A stretch of DNA of 64,000 bases. It comes from Stylophora pistillata. Its lineage: Eukaryota. Position numbers and translations under genes: made by a program. The notes beneath the pieces were generated by a model. It had not been told where the DNA came from, ran no database searches, and saw only the letters and a list, made by a program, of their open reading frames with translations. The stretch lies in contig NW_019217883.1 in the NCBI RefSeq assembly GCF_002571385.2, positions 444,528 to 508,527 on the forward strand, written 5' to 3'. Below, in pieces: positions 1-42,800 of this stretch; positions within the stretch are counted from its first letter, which is position 1, and each line of letters begins with the position of its first letter.

Positions 1-99
1 TAATACCGCAGTTCAAAATATATGAACTTCATATATTCATTGTATCTGATTTATCATCACGGGTTTATTACGAATCAACTTAACGGCCTGCTCCCAGTT

Positions 100-172
100 G
101 GCTTGTTAGCTCAATTGGTAGAGCGCTGCACTAGTATCGCAGAGGTCAGTGGTTCGAATCCCATACAGGCCT
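100..172 (+). mobile_element. tRNA-Thr(AGT)-like sequence, most likely the core of a tRNA-derived interspersed repeat
   Basis: Cloverleaf with acceptor GGCTTGT/ACAGGCC, A-box TAGCTCAATTGG, anticodon arm around CT-AGT-AT, B-box GGTTCGAATCC, then a T-run. A diverged copy with the same upstream flank (ctcccagttggct) lies on - at ~60300-60480 with a GGT anticodon, which argues for a repeat rather than a housekeeping tRNA. Confidence 0.7.
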
Positions 173-1330
173 GATTTTTTTCAGGTCTGATTTTCGCTAT
201 TGCATAAATAGCGCTATCTACTGCGAAGGATCGTACATCATACGTATTTAATACCGCAGTTCAAAATATATGAACTTCATATATTCATTGCATCAGAATG
301 GAAATTGTTGAACGTGGCAACACTCGAGTTTCCTCACTTTCTTGTTTTCATGGTGTGACGTATTTCCTGTAAATGAGAGTCATCCTATCTGTCACAGCTA
401 AGAAGATAAATAGTAGGGATGTTGAGCTCATTTATTTTAATCCAGGGTTAAAACACTTAACTCCTTTGACTACACCTTTTTTTTGGTGATTTAGAAGTTT
501 TCCACTACCTCTGATATGTTTTGCACTTAATAAACCTTTCAGGCTGTGTTATCAGGACATCGATAATTCCAGAATATTACCAGTATCAAAATATTGTAAA
601 CTCTCATGGGGTGTGCAGGCAACAGCAGTGAAAGAAAAATGCACCATTTTTATGCCAAAATAACTAACAATGTATATTTCTGAAAATATATCAATTTGTC
701 AATATATCAATTAAATCATTCGATTGAACAGCTGATGTTAACACTCTAAATACCAGTAGTCTAAATAAATTATAAATTGTAGAAAAAGTAATACTGCATC
801 ACCATTGTGCAGAAGAAATCTGAATCAAAATGTCCTTATCTCAACGAAGCACAACTGTCCAGAGTTTCAGAAGTACAGCTGATAATCCCTTTAGGATCAA
901 CTACTTCAAGTATTCATTAAAAAAGTTAGTATTCAGTTTCTTTACTAATGCCTCATACCTTGTCTTATTTTAACCAAAATAACTTTTTTGGACATTGTCC
1001 TGTTCCAGCAGCCATATTCAAAAATTATTTCTAGAGTTGATGCTTCAATCACTTTCACCAAAAGTCAGCCTTGTTTGTCAAAAGTTAGAAATTGAAAGCA
1101 AAAAACAAAGAACTAGTTCTATGATACACACTAACCATTAATTCCTCATTAAGATCATTTTTGTTCTCCAATCAAACACCTTGATCTTGTACTCTCATTA
1201 AATAATAACTATTATATCATAACTGCTACTCTGAATTAAATCAAGGATAAATATTGTTTGTCATTTTCATTTAAATTTGTTTTGAAAGCATTGTTTTCCA
1301 TACAAACAACACATTAATTAATGTGCTGTT

Positions 1331-4047
1331 TCACTTTATTTTGGTGAATACCAGCCCTACAAGAATGGCTGCAGTTGCAATAATTATGGCCAGAAGCACT
1401 GGATGAATGCTCCATCCATCACTGCTTTGAGCTGTTGTGTTTCCTTGTGCAGGTTTCTTGGCCATAGCTGCAAATGGACACATCCCAGGAGACTGATCTT
1501 TACTGGTATCAATGCTGCTGTAGACCTCTTCAAATGTCAGCTTCTTTTTCTTCTTGGTCACCTGATCCTCATATCCAGCCAGAGCATCTATCTCCTCAAA
1601 CAAATGGATGTTGAGCAGGAAAACATAATTTGCTTCTTTGACAATCTCATCTGATTTGGCTTTGTCAATGCTGAGTTCATCAAGGCAGGATCTGTACTTG
1701 TTCTTAAACTTCTTAGCATCAGGAATGTTATCAAAAACATAGAAGTGCACTCCTTCTCCAGTACTTGGGAGATCCATAGCTTTAGTGGCCATTTTGCGTA
1801 AGATTTGTCCACCAGACAAATCCCCTAGGTACCTGGTGTAATGATGAGCTATCAATAGAGCTGGGTCCTTATCAGCTACTTCATGGATTCTGTCCACGTA
1901 GGCTTTTGTAGCCGCAGACATTTCAACTTGCTCCTTCCATTCCTCTCCAAAATAAAACTCCATATCTTCTTCCAAGGACTGCAGACGACCAAGTTCTTTA
2001 GGAAAATGCACTGCTTTCAACATGTCATGATCTTTATGTCTCTCACTCTCTCCTTCAAGTGCTCTGAAATATAAATGAGGACTGGACAATTAACACTGAT
2101 ACAATCTGCATTGTTACTCAGTCTTAGGGTTACTTGTCAACTATGGTAAGTAGAATTCTAAAGATAGCATCCCTCGCAAACAGCTAAATAATTTGCTATG
2201 ACTCCAAAGCATGTAGCAGAGGTTTGTGCTCAGAAAGTACCCGTATCTCTCTATAATGCATATCAGTAGCTCTCAATATTGCCGTCTTGAACTGCACTTT
2301 CACATGATGGATTGAAACATATTTTTGCTGTTTGTTATATTTTATACTAGTCTACTACTAATTACATTTTGAGATGGGAATAACTATGGCTGCCATACAC
2401 AGCAGTCAGTACTACGCAACTAAAGAGAAATTTAATCTTCATTGCAGAATCGCATTAGGGAGGGTCACAGCAAACCCACATTGATGTTCCTATCCTTGAA
2501 TGGAAATAAGGGGGAAGGGGGGAGGGTCACAGCAAACCCACATTGATGTTCCTATCCTAGAAAGGAAAAAAAGAGGGAAGGAAGGGTGGGTTGGAAAGTG
2601 GAGTGTAATGAGCAAATGTAGTAGCAGTAAATACAACAAGGTAATAAAACCCAGATAATTATAGAGCTTACCTGTAGACAAAGTAAAGATCAGCCAGTAG
2701 TTCTTTATACCACTGTCTCTCAATTCTTCCTTTGGCAAACTCCTTTACAAAGTGAATGTTTTCTGCTTCTCGGTGGATTGGTTTGGTGCCTTTCTTCAAC
2801 TCCTTTGAGAGATGAATAGAGGGTTCTGTTTCCTCAATTTCTTTATTCACATCTTCTATGATGTCATCAATTGCATTCTGAAAAATCTTTGTCCAACGTT
2901 GACCATCCAGCTTGTCCACCAGTAGTTTGCCATCACTGCAGACAGTCTTGAATGGACATCCTCCCGCTGTCACAAATACGGGACACTCCCCCATTTCGTC
3001 TTTCAAGCCGTGGGACACTTCATGTATCTGCTTAAAAATTTCTACAAGCTTAGCACCATGTGATCCCTCCACAGAGAAGGATGGAAGATTGGCAAGCTTT
3101 TTGTAAACATCTCCAATAGTTTCACTGTCCTTATGAGGGCAGCCATCTTTGAATTCAGGACACTGTTTCAGCTCTTTGTCTAACTGTTTGTCTCCAGCTT
3201 TTGCAAATGGACATCCAGATGCAAATGCAGGGCAAGTTTCTTTTAAATCCATGAGGTTAACAAAATGGGTAGCAGGTTCCTCTGACTTTGACTCCAAAGG
3301 CAACACAGAGTCCACTGGACTGAAAAGTGGCTTTCCTCCACTCTCAACAGCTTTAAATGGACAACCATCCTTCTGAAGAATTGGGCACTTGTCAGCTCTC
3401 TCGTGGCTTACACTGTGAATGACTTTCATGGTCTTCATCAGACCTTCTTTATGGTGGCAGTCCTTGTCGCTGCCTGGAATCTGCGAAAGCTTACTGTAGA
3501 TTTCTTCAATCGTTTTAGAATCCTTGAAGGCACATCCTTCTTTAAACTCTGGGCATTTCTTAATTTCTTCCAAAAGAGCATCATTATCCATGTTGGCAAA
3601 TGGACACCCTTCTTTGAAAGCAGGACACTTTTCCTTAAGTTTACTGACATCAGAGGAAGTTAACCCTTCTAATACAGCTGCTGGTGGCTCTATCAAAGGT
3701 TTTCCTTCCTTGCTGGCTTCTTTGAAAGGACAGCCTTCCTCTGTCTTGAATGCTGGACACTCTCCAACCTTCTCTTCCAGCTTTTTAGACCGAGTGTGGA
3801 TGGCTTTCAGCAAGTTAAGTAGATGTTCATGTGTCGATCCCGAGCGATGTTTTATCTCTGGCATCTTGGAAAGTTCTTTCAGGATGTCCTTCACATTGTC
3901 TGAATTCTTAAAGGGGCATCCTTGTTTGAACTCAGGGCATTTCTTGATTTCTTCCATGAAAAGGTCTTGTGTAATCGTAGAATAAGGACAGCCATCTTTG
4001 AAAGCTGGGCAGCTCTCAGTGACTGATTCTGAGCCATATGACACCAT
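1331..4047 (-). CDS. HMOX: Heme oxygenase with N-terminal triple Cys-Pro repeat domain; coding exons 4047-2672 and 2063-1331, ~702 aa
   Basis: Splice TACAG|gtaag...tttcag|AGCA joins LADLYFVYR-ALEGESERHKDH in frame. HO motifs are present: LSKELKKGTKPIHREAEN (proximal His), HHYTRYLGDLSGGQIL (distal Asp/GG kink), a C-terminal GMCPF CP motif and a hydrophobic tail anchor VLLAIIIATAAILVGLVF. Confidence 0.95.
2458..2559. repeat. Intronic ~40-bp direct duplication
   Basis: gggagggtcacagcaaacccacattgatgttcctatcct occurs twice, about 62 nt apart. Confidence 0.9.
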
Positions 4048-4524
4048 GATGATATCCTATAAGGATGGCAAAATTTAACAGCTGGGACAGACAATCCTCT
4101 AAGGGACCTCCTAAGCAAATCTATATATAATTTAATATTTTCACTCCACAGATCACCAAATGAATTATACCCGGTATCTACCAAACACTTCTCCTAACAT
4201 TTCTGTGAATTTGATATGACAATGTGGTGATCCTATGAGGACAAATTTATTTATTAGTCACTCAAAATTGAATTTTGTTTCTGGAAATTAATTGATGGCC
4301 AGTTCATCCAGTCGAGAAGACTTACACTACAATTCATAGAATTTTCTCAAATCTTGCACACGTTGCAGGCAAACCTTTACCTTTAAATTAAGTCAAAGCA
4401 TACGTTTCCGAGTCAGACGAGGAAATAAAAAACAATTCTTTTGGTGAATACATTCGGGCACGAATCATTAAGGCAAGGCTACAAAAACACAGCTGTAACA
4501 GTTTGAAATGTGCTTGGCCTTCCG

Positions 4525-4549
4525 CTGCTATATAGTATTCATGTGATCA
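4525..4549 (-). promoter_or_regulatory. Putative HMOX core promoter: TATA-like TATATAG next to a TCATGTGA E-box
   Basis: On -, TATATAG lies ~150 nt upstream of a strong donor (AAAG|gtaaag, ~4380) that pairs with an acceptor just before the ATG (cttatag|gatatcatcATG), implying a 5'UTR exon. The E-box is at 4539-4546. Confidence 0.45.
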
Positions 4550-5366
4550 ACCGAAAAAGCGATTTTCGCTAAATTTCATCACCTCATTTTCTGATGATCA
4601 GGTTCGAGATCGAAGTAGCTATTTTGCAATGAGCGTTTGAGGGAATCCATGCCAGAAATTTCGTAGGAAACCAGCTTTCCTCTGGCTATAGATTTCGAAG
4701 AGCCAAAGAAACAAATCTCCACTTGTCTTAAAAGAGCGATTTCTCTGTCCATCCCTGGCGTAGATTTCACGGACAATAACTATAGAATTTTAATTAAGCA
4801 CTATTGGAACAACACTGGCTCGTAAGCATAGGAGACAACCCAGTCGAGCGAAACGACATTTCAAGCTTTGTATCCCGAATTACAATGTTTATTAAAAAAA
4901 TTTATAACCCTTCTATTTGGGTAAAAGATTTAATGTTTCCAAAGAACATAAAAGAAAGAGAAGATTTACCTTCAAATGACTTGAGTAGCGTGTTTCCGTC
5001 TTCTAAGTCTCGCCTTCGTCGGGCCAATGTAGTTAGCATTACGCCACGCCAATACTTTAAGACAAATCCGTAACAATCAACGACCAATGAATTTCCTTTA
5101 TTTTGCTCATGTGATCAGTCATGTGACTCTCTTGTCGGTTTCAGTTTTTGCTGCATCATCTGGCTAATAATAGCCCAGTATTGCGAAAGTAATTGCACAA
5201 CAGTATCCCGTTGCTTGGGCCAGCGTTGTCGCGGTATTTTCCCATAATAGTCAGCCCCGTAACGCCACGGACTGCGACCAGATACTAACGAGACCGAAAG
5301 CCGAGGCAGATAATACAGACATGATCTTACACGACAACCGAATTCAATAATTGTTTTATTATACAT

Positions 5367-20144: not shown

Positions 20145-36218
<16,074 letters not shown>

Positions 36219-36848: not shown

Positions 36849-39800
36849 ATGAGCCCTGAGAATCAGCTGGGATTTGATTCGCAAGAGGACGCAAGAAACT
36901 CTAAGAGTAAATCTAAGATAGGCAAAGTATTCCTCGGAATTACAGGGACCGCAACTGTTGGAATTGTGCTGGTGACTACACCATTTGTAACGCCAGCGTT
37001 ACGAAAAATTTGTCTTCCTTACGTACCGGCCACAGAGAGACAAATTGCTAACATCTTACGAATGGGAGCTTCCAAACATAAAGGATCAACCTTGGTGGAC
37101 TTGGGAAGTGGGGACGGAAGAGTGGTTTGTATCATTTTTAATGTCACCCGAGAGTGTTTGATGGGGGGGTGGACTAAAATTGCTTCGAAGTCAACCCTTT
37201 CCCTTCGTTAAAAAAATCAGCCAGATGACCTTTGACCTTTTACACCCTAACATCAGTATCTATTTCCTCCTTACTCTTCTTCTGACAAGGATAATTTATT
37301 TAACAATCTAAGCTTCCTGGGTTGGCAATCATTCCCTTAAATGTTATGATCTTAAGAAATGATTTAGCAGAATTTATGTCAGGACAAATTGGATACTGAT
37401 CACTCCTACAGTTTAAAGGGGTTCATAAGAAATCCCATTTTTGAGAATTTTGAAGTCAGACGAACAGCTATAAAAGAAAAATAAGCCACATTCAGGTCTG
37501 AATGTGGCGAGGGGGGGTTCAAACCTGGACCCCCTTCTGTGCTGGCTTCAGCAATTGACAAGGTGGAACAGAAGGATGTGATATGCAAGGGAAATACTAT
37601 TTCTTTGTAAATTTTGGATCATTTAATTTAATTTATAGGTAATTGCTGCAGCTAGACGAGGTTACCAAGCTCATGGTTACGAACTAAATCACTGGCTGGT
37701 TTGGTACTCAAGATTACAGGCCAGGTTACAAGGACTTCATCACAAAGCTACATTTTCAAGAGCTGACTTGTGGAAGGTGACAAACTGAAATACAATACAA
37801 TACAATACAATGTTCTTTATTTCAAGAGGGTAAATACATGATTAACCCAGCGAAGAGTTTTCTAACACATGGCCCTCTGTAAATAAACTCACCCATCCCA
37901 CCCCAGGGGAGGACATCCATCACACAGTAATCTCGTTTGTGGGAAATTAACGTCTCCTACCCCAACCCTGCAGGAGACGGGACCTCCATTTATTCGTCCC
38001 TATCCGAGAAGACTAGAATATCTAACCATTTCTTGATGTTATAGAAAAGCAGCAAATTCTTCTCATTCATTTTAACCCTTTCCAGCCCAAGAGTGCCATA
38101 TGGCACTCTCCTGTACCACCCCTTCAAAAGCCCAAGAGTGCCATATGGCACGCTTGACCTCATCGTTTTCCAACCAATCTAAAACGTTCTTCCTTTATTG
38201 TTCCAGGTGTCTATTGTATTTCAACCAATAGTGATACAATTTTACTTTCATTTGAGTCTACTTTCAGGGGTAGGGTTCTTACAAATTTTTTATGGTATCG
38301 TAGGCTGAAAATAAATGTTATTATTTCGTAATGGCGGCGCTATTCCAATCGGAGAGCGAGGAAGAAGAGTTTTTGGGATTCGGTCAACAACTTGAATCCA
38401 GCAGAAATGTCTCTGACAGTGAGTCAGATATATCTGTGTCTTGGGTTGTGTAAATACTGAAGACCTTTCGGATTTTGAGCTTACTGACTCAGATACTGAA
38501 GAAGACGGCGTTGTGCCGTGGAACACAAATCGTGATCCAGTCGAAGTGAATCCCTTCGTCCAAAATACTGGTCCAGTCATCTGCCCTCGATTTTTTTAAA
38601 CTGATGTTTAAACAAGAAAATTTTGACAGAATTGCTGAAGAAACCAACCGCTATGCTCGGCAAGCGATGGCAATCAAAGCTGACCCAGAGTGGCGTGAGA
38701 CAAACGCCGTTGAAATCCGTACATTCTTCGCAGTAAACATAATGTTTGGAATCAAACAGCTACCAGAAATCCATTCATACTGGTCAAAGAATCCTCTCCT
38801 TGGCGTTCCGGAGATACAAAAGGTATTTTCAAGAAATCGTTTCAAGAAGATTTCTCAATATCTCCATTTGAACGACAAGAACAGAGATTTACCACGTGGT
38901 AATGCTAACCACGACAAACTTTTCAAAGTGCGGCCGCTACTCGGCATATGGTATTTCGTAGACTGGACTGGACTGGACTGGGCTAGTAAAAGGAGGACTA
39001 GTAAAGCGCGGACTAGTAAAACGCGGACTAGTAAAACGCGGACTAGTAAAACGCGGACTAGTAAAACGACAACGACAAAAAAAACAATTTCATACGAAGG
39101 TGATCATAAGACTTAATGGCAAGCCAATTTAGTAAGTGACAATCCCTGTTCGACTTTTAAGCTGCAAATGGGTTGCACATGCGCCAGATACAAACAAATT
39201 TATAAGTTTAGGCTAAGAAAGAATTTTATTGAGCACCAGTTCAAAATCCTAAAATACACTTTCGTCGTAAATTTCACGGCAGAAACGCAGGAATTCGATG
39301 AATAAAAGTCGCATTAAATCTCCTTGTGTCTAGGTAGAAAGAGTCTCATTGACTTCAGCTTTTCGGTGGAAGAAACACCGATTTACACACGCCATTACAG
39401 AAAACAAACAAGCAGACTGACAACTCCCGGCCAAAACACATATTTGCATTCACTTACAATTTGACTTTCCGTGAAATTTTAAAACGGAACAGAGGTAAAT
39501 CTTCGAAGATTAATCGTCGTTGGAAATAAAAAATACTTTCCGTAAGATCTCTAACTGTTTTTCTTTTTACGAGAAAATCGTCGCTACTATTAAATTGAGC
39601 ANNNNNNNNNNNNNNNNNNNNNNNNNNNNNNNNNNNNNNNNNNNNNNNNNNNNNNNNNNNNNNNNNNNNNNNNNNNNNNNNNNNNNNNNNNNNNNNNNNN
39701 NNNNNNNNNNNNNNNNNNNNNNNNNNNNNNNNNNNNNNNNNNNNNNNNNNNNNNNNNNNNNNNNNNNNNNNNNNNNNNNNNNNNNNNNNNNNNNNNNNNN

Positions 39801-42800
39801 NNNNNNNNNNNNNNNNNNNNNNNNNNNNNNNNNNNNNNNNNNNNNNNNNNNNNNNNNNNNNNNNNNNNNNNNNNNNNNNNNNNNNNNNNNNNNNNNNNNN
39901 NNNNNNNNNNNNNNNNNNNNNNNNNNNNNNNNNNNNNNNNNNNNNNNNNNNNNNNNNNNNNNNNNNNNNNNNNNNNNNNNNNNNNNNNNNNNNNNNNNNN
40001 NNNNNNNNNNNNNNNNNNNNNNNNNNNNNNNNNNNNNNNNNNNNNNNNNNNNNNNNNNNNNNNNNNNNNNNNNNNNNNNNNNNNNNNNNNNNNNNNNNNN
40101 NNNNNNNNNNNNNNNNNNNNNNNNNNNNNNNNNNNNNNNNNNNNNNNNNNNNNNNNNNNNNNNNNNNNNNNNNNNNNNNNNNNNNNNNNNNNNNNNNNNN
40201 NNNNNNNNNNNNNNNNNNNNNNNNNNNNNNNNNNNNNNNNNNNNNNNNNNNNNNNNNNNNNNNNNNNNNNNNNNNNNNNNNNNNNNNNNNNNNNNNNNNN
40301 NNNNNNNNNNNNNNNNNNNNNNNNNNNNNNNNNNNNNTTCTTCGCAGTAAACATAATGTTTGGAATCAAACAGCTACCAGAAATCCATTCATACTGGTCA
40401 AAGAATCCTCTCCTTGGCGTTCCGGAGATACAAAAGGTATTTTCAAGAAATCGTTTCAAGAAGATTTCTCAATATCTCCATTTGAACGACAAGAACAGAG
40501 ATTTACCACGTGGTAATGCTAACCACGACAAACTTTTCAAAGTGCGGCCGCTACTCGATTCTGTTGTTTCTTCGATAAGAAGCGAATACAGGCCAAAAAA
40601 AAGTTTCCATCGACGAGGCGATAATTCCCTTTAAAGGAAGGCTCGGAATGAAACAGTACATGCCGCTAAAGCCAGTAAAGAGAGGCATTAAAGTTTGGGA
40701 ATGTGCCGACGCTTCGAATGGCTATGTTTGGAACCTGAGTGTTTACACGGGGAAGGAGCGAGATGCTAACCCGAACAAGGACTTGGATACCGTGTTGTCT
40801 ACAATTAAACACGGCCCTTGGTTGGCAAAAACCAGCATGTTTTTATTGACAACTTCTTTTCTTCGATTGCCTTAGCGGAAAATTTGCTTCGCGACGAAAT
40901 TTATGTTTGTGGAACTGTCCGTTCAAATCGTCATGGCATTCCACGGGAGATCGCTCCAACCACGCAACGAGTGAAACGTCTTCGACAAGGAGAGTCGCTA
41001 TTCCTGCGAAGAGAGAATTTGGTCGTAACTGTGTGGTAAGACAAGAAACCCGTGTATTTCCTCAGCACACAATCTAATCCTGTCGGCGATGAGCGAGTAA
41101 ACCGGACGCAGAAAGATGGAAGTATTGTTGAAGTGCCGAGCGTTCCCGTTGTTAAGTCTTACAACAACAACATGGGCGGTGTTGATCTTAGTGATCAACT
41201 TCGCGGATACTATATGACGGGAAGAAAATCAAAGAAATGGTGGCGCTGCCTTGTTTGGTTTCTCGTTGATGTTTCTATCGTCAATGCACACATTCTGGAG
41301 AGATTATCTCTGAATCACAGAAACAGAACTCAGCTCGCTTTTCGGCTGGAATTGGTCCCAGATTTGATCGGTGACTTTTCGTCACGAAGATTGTCAGTGA
41401 GTTCTGGGCGAATTGAAGGAGGGCACTGGCCGATTTCCTACACCAAAGGCCGCTGCAAGCGTTGCCTAAAGCAGAAGAAAACTACTTGGTGTCGAATGGC
41501 TTGCGAACTTTGCGGCAAACGCATTTGCTTAGACTGCTTTCGAAATCATACCGCAGAGGATCTCGCTTGAACAGTGCCGCGAGATTTGAAATTGCACTTT
41601 GCTAATTTTTGTCATTAAAGAAATTTTTGCCTTTGAAAATCTTAAACATAACATGCTACATGCATTTAGTCCTTAGTTTTACTCGCTTGTATAGTAGAAT
41701 GAGCATGATAAGTGGAATTAAGTAGTTTCTTGCTTATGTAGTTGCTTATCATAAGACAACATGGAGTCAATATGCAAGTTTTTGTTTTGCTCCAATTTGC
41801 AGCTGTGTAGTTCAACAGCATTTTCCTGAAAGGTTGAGATTTTTATACCATTAGAAAGCCTATCATTTTCAGAGTAATGTTTTTCTGTAATGTTTTTGCT
41901 CTAAATTCTTAGTTTACAAGATATGAAATAAAATGTGGAATGATGTTATTTTGGCTTAGTGAAGTCAATTTCCCTCGGACAGGAGGGGGTTTCCCAGCAT
42001 GTGGCACCCTTGGTTAAGACCCGGAGTGTTGGTCCGGCCAGGGCTTGAACCCTCGACCTCCCGCGCAACAGTCCAGCGCTCTATCCATTGAGCTAACCGG
42101 GAGGCGGTTAGCTCAATGGATAGATCCAAGTGCAATCACATATTATCATTGATGTTTATAAGTCTGGTTGGAAGTTTACATGCCAACAATGTTTTCTACT
42201 CACCATGGCAAACAAAGTTCACAGCTTGCAGCACTGGATACAGCATTTCTCTTGATCATCTGGACCCTGAATGTGTTTTGTTGTGTTCCATTTATTTACA
42301 GGTTAATCTGTCAACCCCTGACACCATTGTAATATTTGGAGTCTCAGAGATGGTAATGTTACACTTCAAATTTTCCCTGGTTTAACAATTTTGAAAACAG
42401 TTTATTTTAATTTTATATTATAATAGCCTTAAAAGGTTTGTCTCGGATTTATATGAGGGCCATAACCTGAGTCAGAGGGAAAACTAAACGGTGTTTAAAA
42501 ATCTTTTGATTGAAAGGGAAATTTGAACCACAATAGTAATATATTAAAACATCCTTAATTACTTATGAGGGCTCACGATGGCTCTTTATTAAGTCATGTA
42601 TTAATATTTATCATTTGTACTTGTGTAATTATGCTTTCTTTCTACTTGGAAATATGTAGATGCCAAAGCTCCAAGATAAGTTCCAAGAAGAAATGAAGGA
42701 TGATGCTCAAATACTAGCATGTCGTTTTCCATTACCCAACTGGAAACCAACAGATAAGATTGAGGAAGGAATTGACAGTGTATGGTTGTATCAAAGACCA

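Follow-up and report, generated by a model that had tools for sequence, protein, structure and literature searches.

A coral heme oxygenase with heme-regulatory-type motifs built from an apparently undescribed domain family

How labile heme is buffered in the cell and delivered to heme oxygenase (HO) is an open question in the field. Yeast Hap1, BACH1 and the presequence of ALAS each contain several Cys-Pro (CP) motifs, followed by a hydrophobic residue, which are used to sense or bind heme; in these proteins each motif is short and linear and stands on its own, in a disordered stretch of a transcription factor or presequence. Among HOs themselves, the only accessory motifs to have been studied are the two or three CP motifs of HO-2, whose cellular role is still debated. 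Heme-regulatory motifs (HRMs) of this kind bind ferric heme through the Cys of the Cys-Pro, often with a distal His, and those of HO-2 influence loading of the catalytic site (PMC8808069, PMC2742820). The CP cysteines of HO-2 also function as a redox switch between thiol and disulfide (PMC2742820). Here we describe the HO gene of the reef-building coral Stylophora pistillata, which lies on the minus strand of a 64,000-nucleotide (nt) stretch of contig NW_019217883.1 (NCBI RefSeq assembly GCF_002571385.2, forward-strand positions 444,528 to 508,527). We call this whole stretch the window and count positions from its first letter. The product of the gene appears to be an HO with heme-regulatory-type motifs, built from an apparently undescribed domain family.

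Mammalian HO-2 and the coral HO share several features: both are tail-anchored, both have the PF01126 fold, both carry Cys-Pro-Phe outside the core, and in both one such motif stands just before the anchor (C654 in the coral protein). Between core and anchor HO-2 has two HRMs, Cys265-Pro and Cys282-Pro (PMC8808069), where the coral HO has one. The two proteins differ in the remaining motifs. The three CP motifs of HO-2 lie in the flexible C-terminal segment and in the core, whereas the coral HO has 17 more, in three folded-looking N-terminal domains of about 115 amino acids (aa). The paired layout of these units, CPxFxxGCPF with three pairs per unit, is absent from HO-2. Nor do they resemble the isolated motifs of Hap1, BACH1 and ALAS, because in the coral units paired C-x6-C motifs are set into a conserved, apparently helical domain with a conserved His, on an enzyme that degrades the ligand.

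The coding exons of the gene (4047-2672 and 2063-1331, minus strand) join into a translation of 702 aa, which supplies the residue numbers used here. Scans with a hidden Markov model (HMM) of the repeat unit were run locally on this joined translation; for the database searches each exon was used separately, and the natural full-length orthologs P0013 and P0020 served as whole-protein stand-ins. In both exon products the sole Pfam family found was Heme_oxygenase (PF01126). The HO fold starts at the end of the first coding exon (aa 412-459; 2672-2814, minus strand), where GTKPIH425REAE carries the proximal His and PF01126 matches aa 412-458 (E 2.5e-11; 44.2 bits, profile positions 2-48). The second coding exon takes up the profile at position 47 and follows it to position 204 (198.8 bits, E 1.1e-58); the gathering cut-off is 23 in both cases. 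The proximal-His helix and the Gly-rich distal helix, YLGDLSGGQ at aa 537, are both intact. Judged by these motifs, the protein is an HO of the HO-1/HO-2 type with an intact catalytic core. Farther along, the HO-2-like Cys-Pro GMC654PF (1475-1480, minus strand) stands about 26 residues ahead of the membrane anchor, and the majority consensus of the family alignment has CPF at the place of C654. The anchor is a hydrophobic C-terminal tail (aa 681-698, VLLAIIIATAAILVGLVF; 1346-1399, minus strand). As read from the translation, the coral HO is a tail-anchored, cytosol-facing enzyme. No second HO match was found in the S. pistillata assembly (397.6 Mb), where the gene in the window stands alone, implying that the form with CP units does the housekeeping job.

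A first-pass annotation of this DNA had reported an N-terminal extension of about 410 aa with three repeat units. The extension is real: an HMM of the unit, built from relatives, finds all three, and the span then assigned to them (2914-4011) covers the units correctly. Unit 1 (aa 8-122; 3682-4026, minus strand) contains the pairs C13/C20, C37/C44 and C97/C106, with His at 67, 73, 75 and 84 (unit HMM E 3.6e-41). Unit 2 (aa 136-248; 3304-3642, minus strand) contains C141/C148, C165/C172 and C221/C229, with His at 198, 199, 211 and 215 (E 7.7e-36); its fourth Cys is retained with Ala next to it (C172-A). Unit 3 (aa 267-381; 2905-3249, minus strand) contains C272/C279, C296/C303 and C355/C364, an extra C370, and His at 330, 342 and 346 (E 6.7e-40), and is 37% identical to unit 1 and 43% to unit 2. 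Recounting in the translation gave the same 17 CP dipeptides, as 6+5+6 in the paired layout, that had been described from the letters alone: they stand at aa 13, 20, 37, 44, 97 and 106, at 141, 148, 165, 221 and 229, and at 272, 279, 296, 303, 355 and 364, and the further one near the anchor, at 654, belongs to the GMCPF also listed then. Within aa 1-400, Pro comes next in 17 of 20 Cys. In 20,000 shuffles of this region the mean number of CP dipeptides was 1.34 and the maximum 7.

Each unit, about 115 aa long, has three CPxFxxGCP[FY] pairs arranged around a short helix and a long His-bearing helix, in agreement with the motif description given earlier. In the first half, CPxFxxGCP[FY] is separated by a spacer (Cys-to-Cys distance mostly 17 residues) from CPEFKxGC[PA][FH]K, after which comes the short helix; the second half continues with a loop, often with a His, a helix of about 23 residues with the conserved His, CPx[FL]x3-5GCPFK and GKxL. 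The HRM signature of a CP followed by a hydrophobic residue is present throughout, the second Cys of a pair being followed mostly by Pro-Phe or Pro-Tyr; after the first Cys comes Pro-x-Phe, with Leu for Phe in unit 2, pair 3. An AlphaFold 2 (AF2) model of unit 3 (aa 258-400; 68 sequences) is nearly all helical, with a predicted local distance difference test score (pLDDT) of 73. For the whole exon product (35 sequences) the pLDDT is 46, which makes that model informative for the secondary-structure pattern only; the same helix pattern is repeated in each unit.

The CP extension is transcribed in frame with the HO. The joint 2063|2672 is present in RNA contigs of all four public runs, two of them recorded as polyA RNA-seq. 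Contigs that span the joint continue through unit 3 to 3368, and others tile the rest of the repeat exon (3340-3733, 3704-3751 and 3722-4058), so that the case of transcripts without the repeats, raised when the gene was first annotated, is not borne out. The breaks at 3330-3368 are graph branches common to a paralog; a loose contig end there matches this paralog exactly, implying that it too is present in these RNA libraries. The open reading frame (ORF) 4047-2671 (minus strand) runs without interruption for 459 codons. The coding part of the repeat exon is indeed the uninterrupted 1376 nt first proposed, but the exon starts at 4056 and not at the ATG, and a non-coding 5' exon is spliced onto it. 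The large exon (2672-4056, minus strand) comprises a 9-nt leader, the ATG at 4047, the three CP units, a linker and the first HO helix with the proximal His. It is followed by intron 2 (2064-2671, minus strand; 608 nt, GT..AG), with the GT donor at 2671-2670 and the AG acceptor directly before 2063, and by the last coding exon (1331-2063, minus strand), which holds the rest of the HO fold, the CP at 654, the tail anchor and the stop codon (1331-1333). The 3' untranslated region extends to at least 1000, RNA contigs covering 1000-2063.

At the other end of the transcript, contigs depart from the genome sequence at 4058 and continue, in loose ends, into an exact match to 4585-4614. This uncovers a non-coding 5' exon, with its 3' end at 4583-4614 (minus strand) and a GT donor at 4582-4581, and a 526-nt intron 1 within the 5' leader (4057-4582, minus strand; GT..AG). 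The 5' exon reaches farther upstream, and at least about 112 nt of it are found in RNA contigs. Once the leader is spliced, there is an in-frame stop 8 codons 5' of the ATG at 4047, which implies that translation starts at the first in-frame ATG and takes in the repeats. Out-of-frame upstream ATGs also occur in the leader (4583-4800, minus strand, spliced to 4056), at 4752, 4650 and 4587, and open upstream ORFs of 111, 77 and 56 codons; these overlap the main ATG and end at about 3891. Such overlapping ORFs could throttle or regulate translation of the HO.

Across 222 full-length units the six Cys are conserved at 98-100%, the Pro after each Cys at 75-99%, the Phe at +3 of pairs 1 and 2 at 100% and the His equivalent to H342 at 90%. 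C-x6-C spacing is kept in 86-93% of units for pairs 1 and 2. Orthologs thus keep the region with its CP and His positions, each of the six Cys at 98% or more, against the possibility, raised with the first reading of the gene, that they might lack it. The paired His (H-x10/11-H) proposed at that time stood only in part: one His is conserved, and the second, 11-13 residues upstream of it, is frequent, in about three-quarters of units, but not fixed, leaving a ligand set of six Cys and one His. The ratio of nonsynonymous to synonymous substitution between the HO exon and a two-unit paralog from the same genome is 0.25. By this comparison, the CP unit is under purifying selection.

A fixed pair spacing, together with the short helix that each Cys starts in the model, is what might be expected if the unit were only a thiol/disulfide redox sensor, ligand-free, in which oxidative stress closes the pairs and alters HO activity, stability or partners. 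The redox switch formed by the CP cysteines of HO-2 offers a precedent (PMC2742820), and HO is a stress enzyme. We nevertheless consider this explanation improbable. Cys-to-His replacements within pairs, which do occur, would be senseless for a disulfide, and the conserved His and invariant Phe would be left unexplained. Capacity is a better fit than switching to arrays that reach ten unit matches and to an HO with six units.

The repeat had been put forward as an undescribed domain, and no characterised domain matched it in Pfam, NCBIfam, PDB sequences, solved folds or the ESM Atlas. Pfam and NCBIfam hold no family for the CP unit, giving only sub-threshold or half-motif matches. A PDB sequence search with the unit yielded nothing below E 0.3, and Foldseek of the unit model against the PDB no match at E <= 0.001 (E above 4). 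VIA-align of the unit model against 48,161 chains reached a best Z of 4.6, which is noise level, on generic helical hairpins; a Mycobacterium heme-binding protein in its top row is likewise at noise level. Neither unit 3 nor P0043 had a usable match in the ESM Atlas. No account of a CP-unit domain turned up in full-text searches of the literature, where one candidate paper proved to concern the unrelated HugZ family. By these searches, the CP unit appears to be an uncatalogued, undescribed domain family.

The weak Pfam matches, to Fer4_11, zf-TRAF_2 and zf-CCCH_DUS3L, are compositional or cover half a motif. The first half of a CCCH finger, C-x-x-F-x-x-G-x-C, resembles the coral CPxFxxGCP, but its second half, C-x5-C-x3-H, is absent from the coral unit; the coral HO has no CCCH zinc finger match at E <= 1, and the zf-CCCH_DUS3L family (PF25585) aligns to relatives at profile positions 1-17 of 32 only. 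The 4Fe-4S family Fer4_11 (PF13247) matches the coral HO at E 0.053, with 14.2 bits against a cut-off of 26.2, and the unit has C-x6-C, not CxxCxxCxxxCP. This weak similarity, also below cut-off in P0031 (E 1.2e-4), bears on the idea of an Fe-S cluster in the unit, which would make it an internal electron donor in place of ferredoxin or P450 reductase. HO requires seven electrons per turnover, and the Cys-rich unit stands directly N-terminal to the core. Against this, the spacing is unlike any ferredoxin motif, these matches fall below the Pfam cut-offs, and tandem multiplication, stand-alone arrays and fusions to transporter and RhoGAP proteins are unlike an electron carrier. We regard an Fe-S carrier as very improbable.

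Two further candidates were rejected. A link to immune sensors through STAND NTPase, TIR or Schlafen proteins fails because the paired motif is almost absent from all five proteins concerned (P0175, P0227, P0229, P0239 and P0242), which are long TIR, Schlafen or AAA_16 (STAND-type) proteins matched by composition only. P0175 and P0242, whose sequences were read, contain arrays of another repeat of about 26 residues (QPQFADKCPWEKL; QPQFADKCPWEKLDGxDW). The five proteins have no relation to the CP unit but form a curious repeat family of their own. The OmpA/TSP_3 hit P0247 lacks the motif.

Relatives of the unit were collected with aa 1-400 alone as the query, which retrieved 130 proteins from a word-indexed collection and 154 cluster representatives in a full HMMER scan. 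HO is present in 121 of the 251 collected relatives and, in those listed, the units are N-terminal to the HO core. Scleractinian and actiniarian orthologs (54-88% identity) retain each of the three units. Among octocorals, the HO of Xenia has two units and that of Dendronephthya six; the latter (P0252, Dendronephthya gigantea LOC114515576) is a 1117-aa HO with six tandem units and 36 CP, then the HO core and tail anchor, and is the largest array on an HO that we found. The first-pass annotation had considered the extension in a cnidarian host and had looked to anthozoans for conserved hits. The unit is no cnidarian novelty: it is fused to HO in amoebozoans, alveolates, stramenopiles and fungi as well, where one unit plus HO is common. 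One unit plus HO is the usual form among non-animal relatives, whose named sources include Balamuthia, Durusdinium and Chrysophaeum. In Mucorales, the HOs have pairs 1 and 2 only, pair 3 being absent. No named bilaterian (including vertebrate) or plant protein was seen among the hits, most of which are nameless. In one unusual relative, P0226 (796 aa), two N-terminal CP pairs stand ahead of three stretches that match Pfam Heme_oxygenase (together 652 bits), so that it looks like a triple-HO protein.

Most relatives that lack HO are made up almost wholly of units; as many as ten unit matches occur in Planoprotostelium, and Physarum, Plasmodiophora and Spongospora have such proteins too. In a few, units are attached to a major facilitator superfamily (MFS) transporter, at its tail, or to RhoGAP or SnoaL-like proteins; by analogy, this presence on unrelated proteins is like that of regulatory ligand modules. 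In a maximum-likelihood tree of the units, hexacoral units 1, 2 and 3 fall into a clade each (support 99/98, 100/98 and 92/90). Stony-coral and sea-anemone sequences are both present in all three, implying that the triplication is older than the split between these groups and that each copy has been retained since. From the tree, octocoral units multiplied independently. The distribution indicates that the CP unit is an ancient eukaryotic module and not a cnidarian invention; anthozoans only multiplied it.

The S. pistillata genome itself holds further CP-unit genes. A two-unit paralog (G000:C100:420776-421579, plus strand; locus L002, 1375-2325) lies on the same contig, about 24 kb outside the window and convergent with the HO gene, and has neither an HO domain nor a membrane anchor. 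Downstream of an acceptor site its product is identical at 273 of 273 positions to S. pistillata LOC111327423. A diverged CP-unit family (about 30% identity; loci L003-L006) is found on another contig, at G000:C687:15508-16503 (minus strand) and 25762-26769 (plus strand), about 10 kb apart. His takes the place of the second Cys in its third pair (CPIFAHDAH), and the family resembles Actinia LOC116294377. Within the window, runs of N at 29166-29178, 39602-40337 and 53844 total 750.

The repeated fusion of the unit to HO across supergroups implies that it is tied to heme degradation. Taken with the fixed CP-plus-aromatic signature of HRMs, whose defining residues are just the ones under strong constraint in the unit, copy numbers of one to six on HO and the existence of stand-alone arrays, it leads us to favour heme capture and hand-off: at slightly below an even chance, the unit may be an HRM-like module that captures ferric heme and is gated by redox state. 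In such a scheme, Cys thiolates of the units would bind ferric heme in the reducing cytosol, the helix His might be the second axial ligand, and packing on the porphyrin would come from the invariant Phe and from flanking Lys. The units would concentrate labile heme beside the catalytic pocket and hand it over to the core; oxidation of the C-x6-C pairs to disulfides could turn binding off, a mechanism that has been proposed for HO-2. With extra units, from one to two, three or six, capacity or avidity would rise, and stand-alone arrays would be soluble buffers. The variable copy number on HO and the stand-alone arrays fit such a capacity or avidity module. The data establish the gene model and its transcription, the anatomy and conservation of the unit, its fusion partners and the copy-number series; what the units bind, their passing it on to the core and a redox switch acting on them are what we infer.

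Several points weigh against heme capture. Mutating the HRMs of HO-2 left heme buffering in cells unaltered (PMC8808069). Classical HRMs are short and lie in disordered segments, and a unit that AF2 predicts to be helical (pLDDT 73) would fit a metal-stabilised domain equally well. A C-x6-C pair whose second Cys is preceded by Gly looks like the first half of a CCCH finger, and zf-CCCH_DUS3L matches Physarum relatives. The conserved His is missing in one paralog group, which keeps pair 3. Finally, there are Cys-to-His swaps at ligand positions, such as HPAFAAGCPY in P0065 and the CPIFAHDAH of the diverged coral paralogs, and these are typical of metal sites.

The unit could instead be a Zn- or Fe(II)-binding domain with the C-x6-C pairs as half-sites, pairs 1 and 2 making a Cys4 site and pair 3 with the helix His a second one. 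It would then be a structural platform for a partner (for example a reductase) or an acceptor for the Fe(II) released by HO, and stand-alone arrays would be metallothionein-like stores. Six invariant Cys and one His in a foldable helical unit would suit such a site, as would the Cys-to-His substitutions just described, and the Mucorales HOs with pairs 1 and 2 only point to a self-standing four-Cys module. The CxxFxxGxC half of CCCH fingers is similar, zf-CCCH_DUS3L scoring 36.9 bits on a Physarum relative (cut-off 30), and AF2 confidence for the whole region falls to pLDDT 46 in a model without cofactor. Yet a Zn site has no need of the Pro that is nearly fixed behind each of the six Cys, or of the invariant aromatic, which together are an HRM signature. 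The coral HO has no zinc-finger or Fe-S family match above cut-off in a search to E 1, and the unit model no fold match to a metal-binding domain (best Z 4.6). In the paralog group that keeps pair 3 without the His, the second site would be incomplete. Both the variation in copy number and the dominance of HO among the partners speak for the substrate over scaffolding. We think a metal-binding domain unlikely, while giving it more weight than either a pure redox sensor or an Fe-S carrier, and keep heme capture as the favoured reading. Between the two, capture of heme, or else of a metal, on behalf of the enzyme is the most likely function of the unit.

What would these units mean for HO biology? 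HOs of no fewer than five major eukaryotic lineages carry them, in up to six copies, and they belong to the sole HO form of a reef-building coral, an animal whose handling of oxidative stress and iron matters for bleaching. If they bind heme, they would add a missing protein family to models of heme trafficking and explain the origin of the HO-2 motifs; if they bind metal, they would represent a new metal-binding fold coupled to the iron-releasing step. A broader proposal, which we offer tentatively, is that the unit is an undescribed cofactor-binding family: a modular heme (or iron) sponge that is the ancestral N-terminal partner of an HO anchored in the endoplasmic reticulum and acts as an antenna tuned by copy number. 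If so, this substrate-capture antenna would be sized by its copies, one in protists, three in hexacorals and six in an octocoral. The stand-alone arrays would form a so far unrecognised class of cytosolic heme-buffer proteins, and the CP motifs at the C-terminus of HO-2 would be what is left of a far older scheme of regulation.

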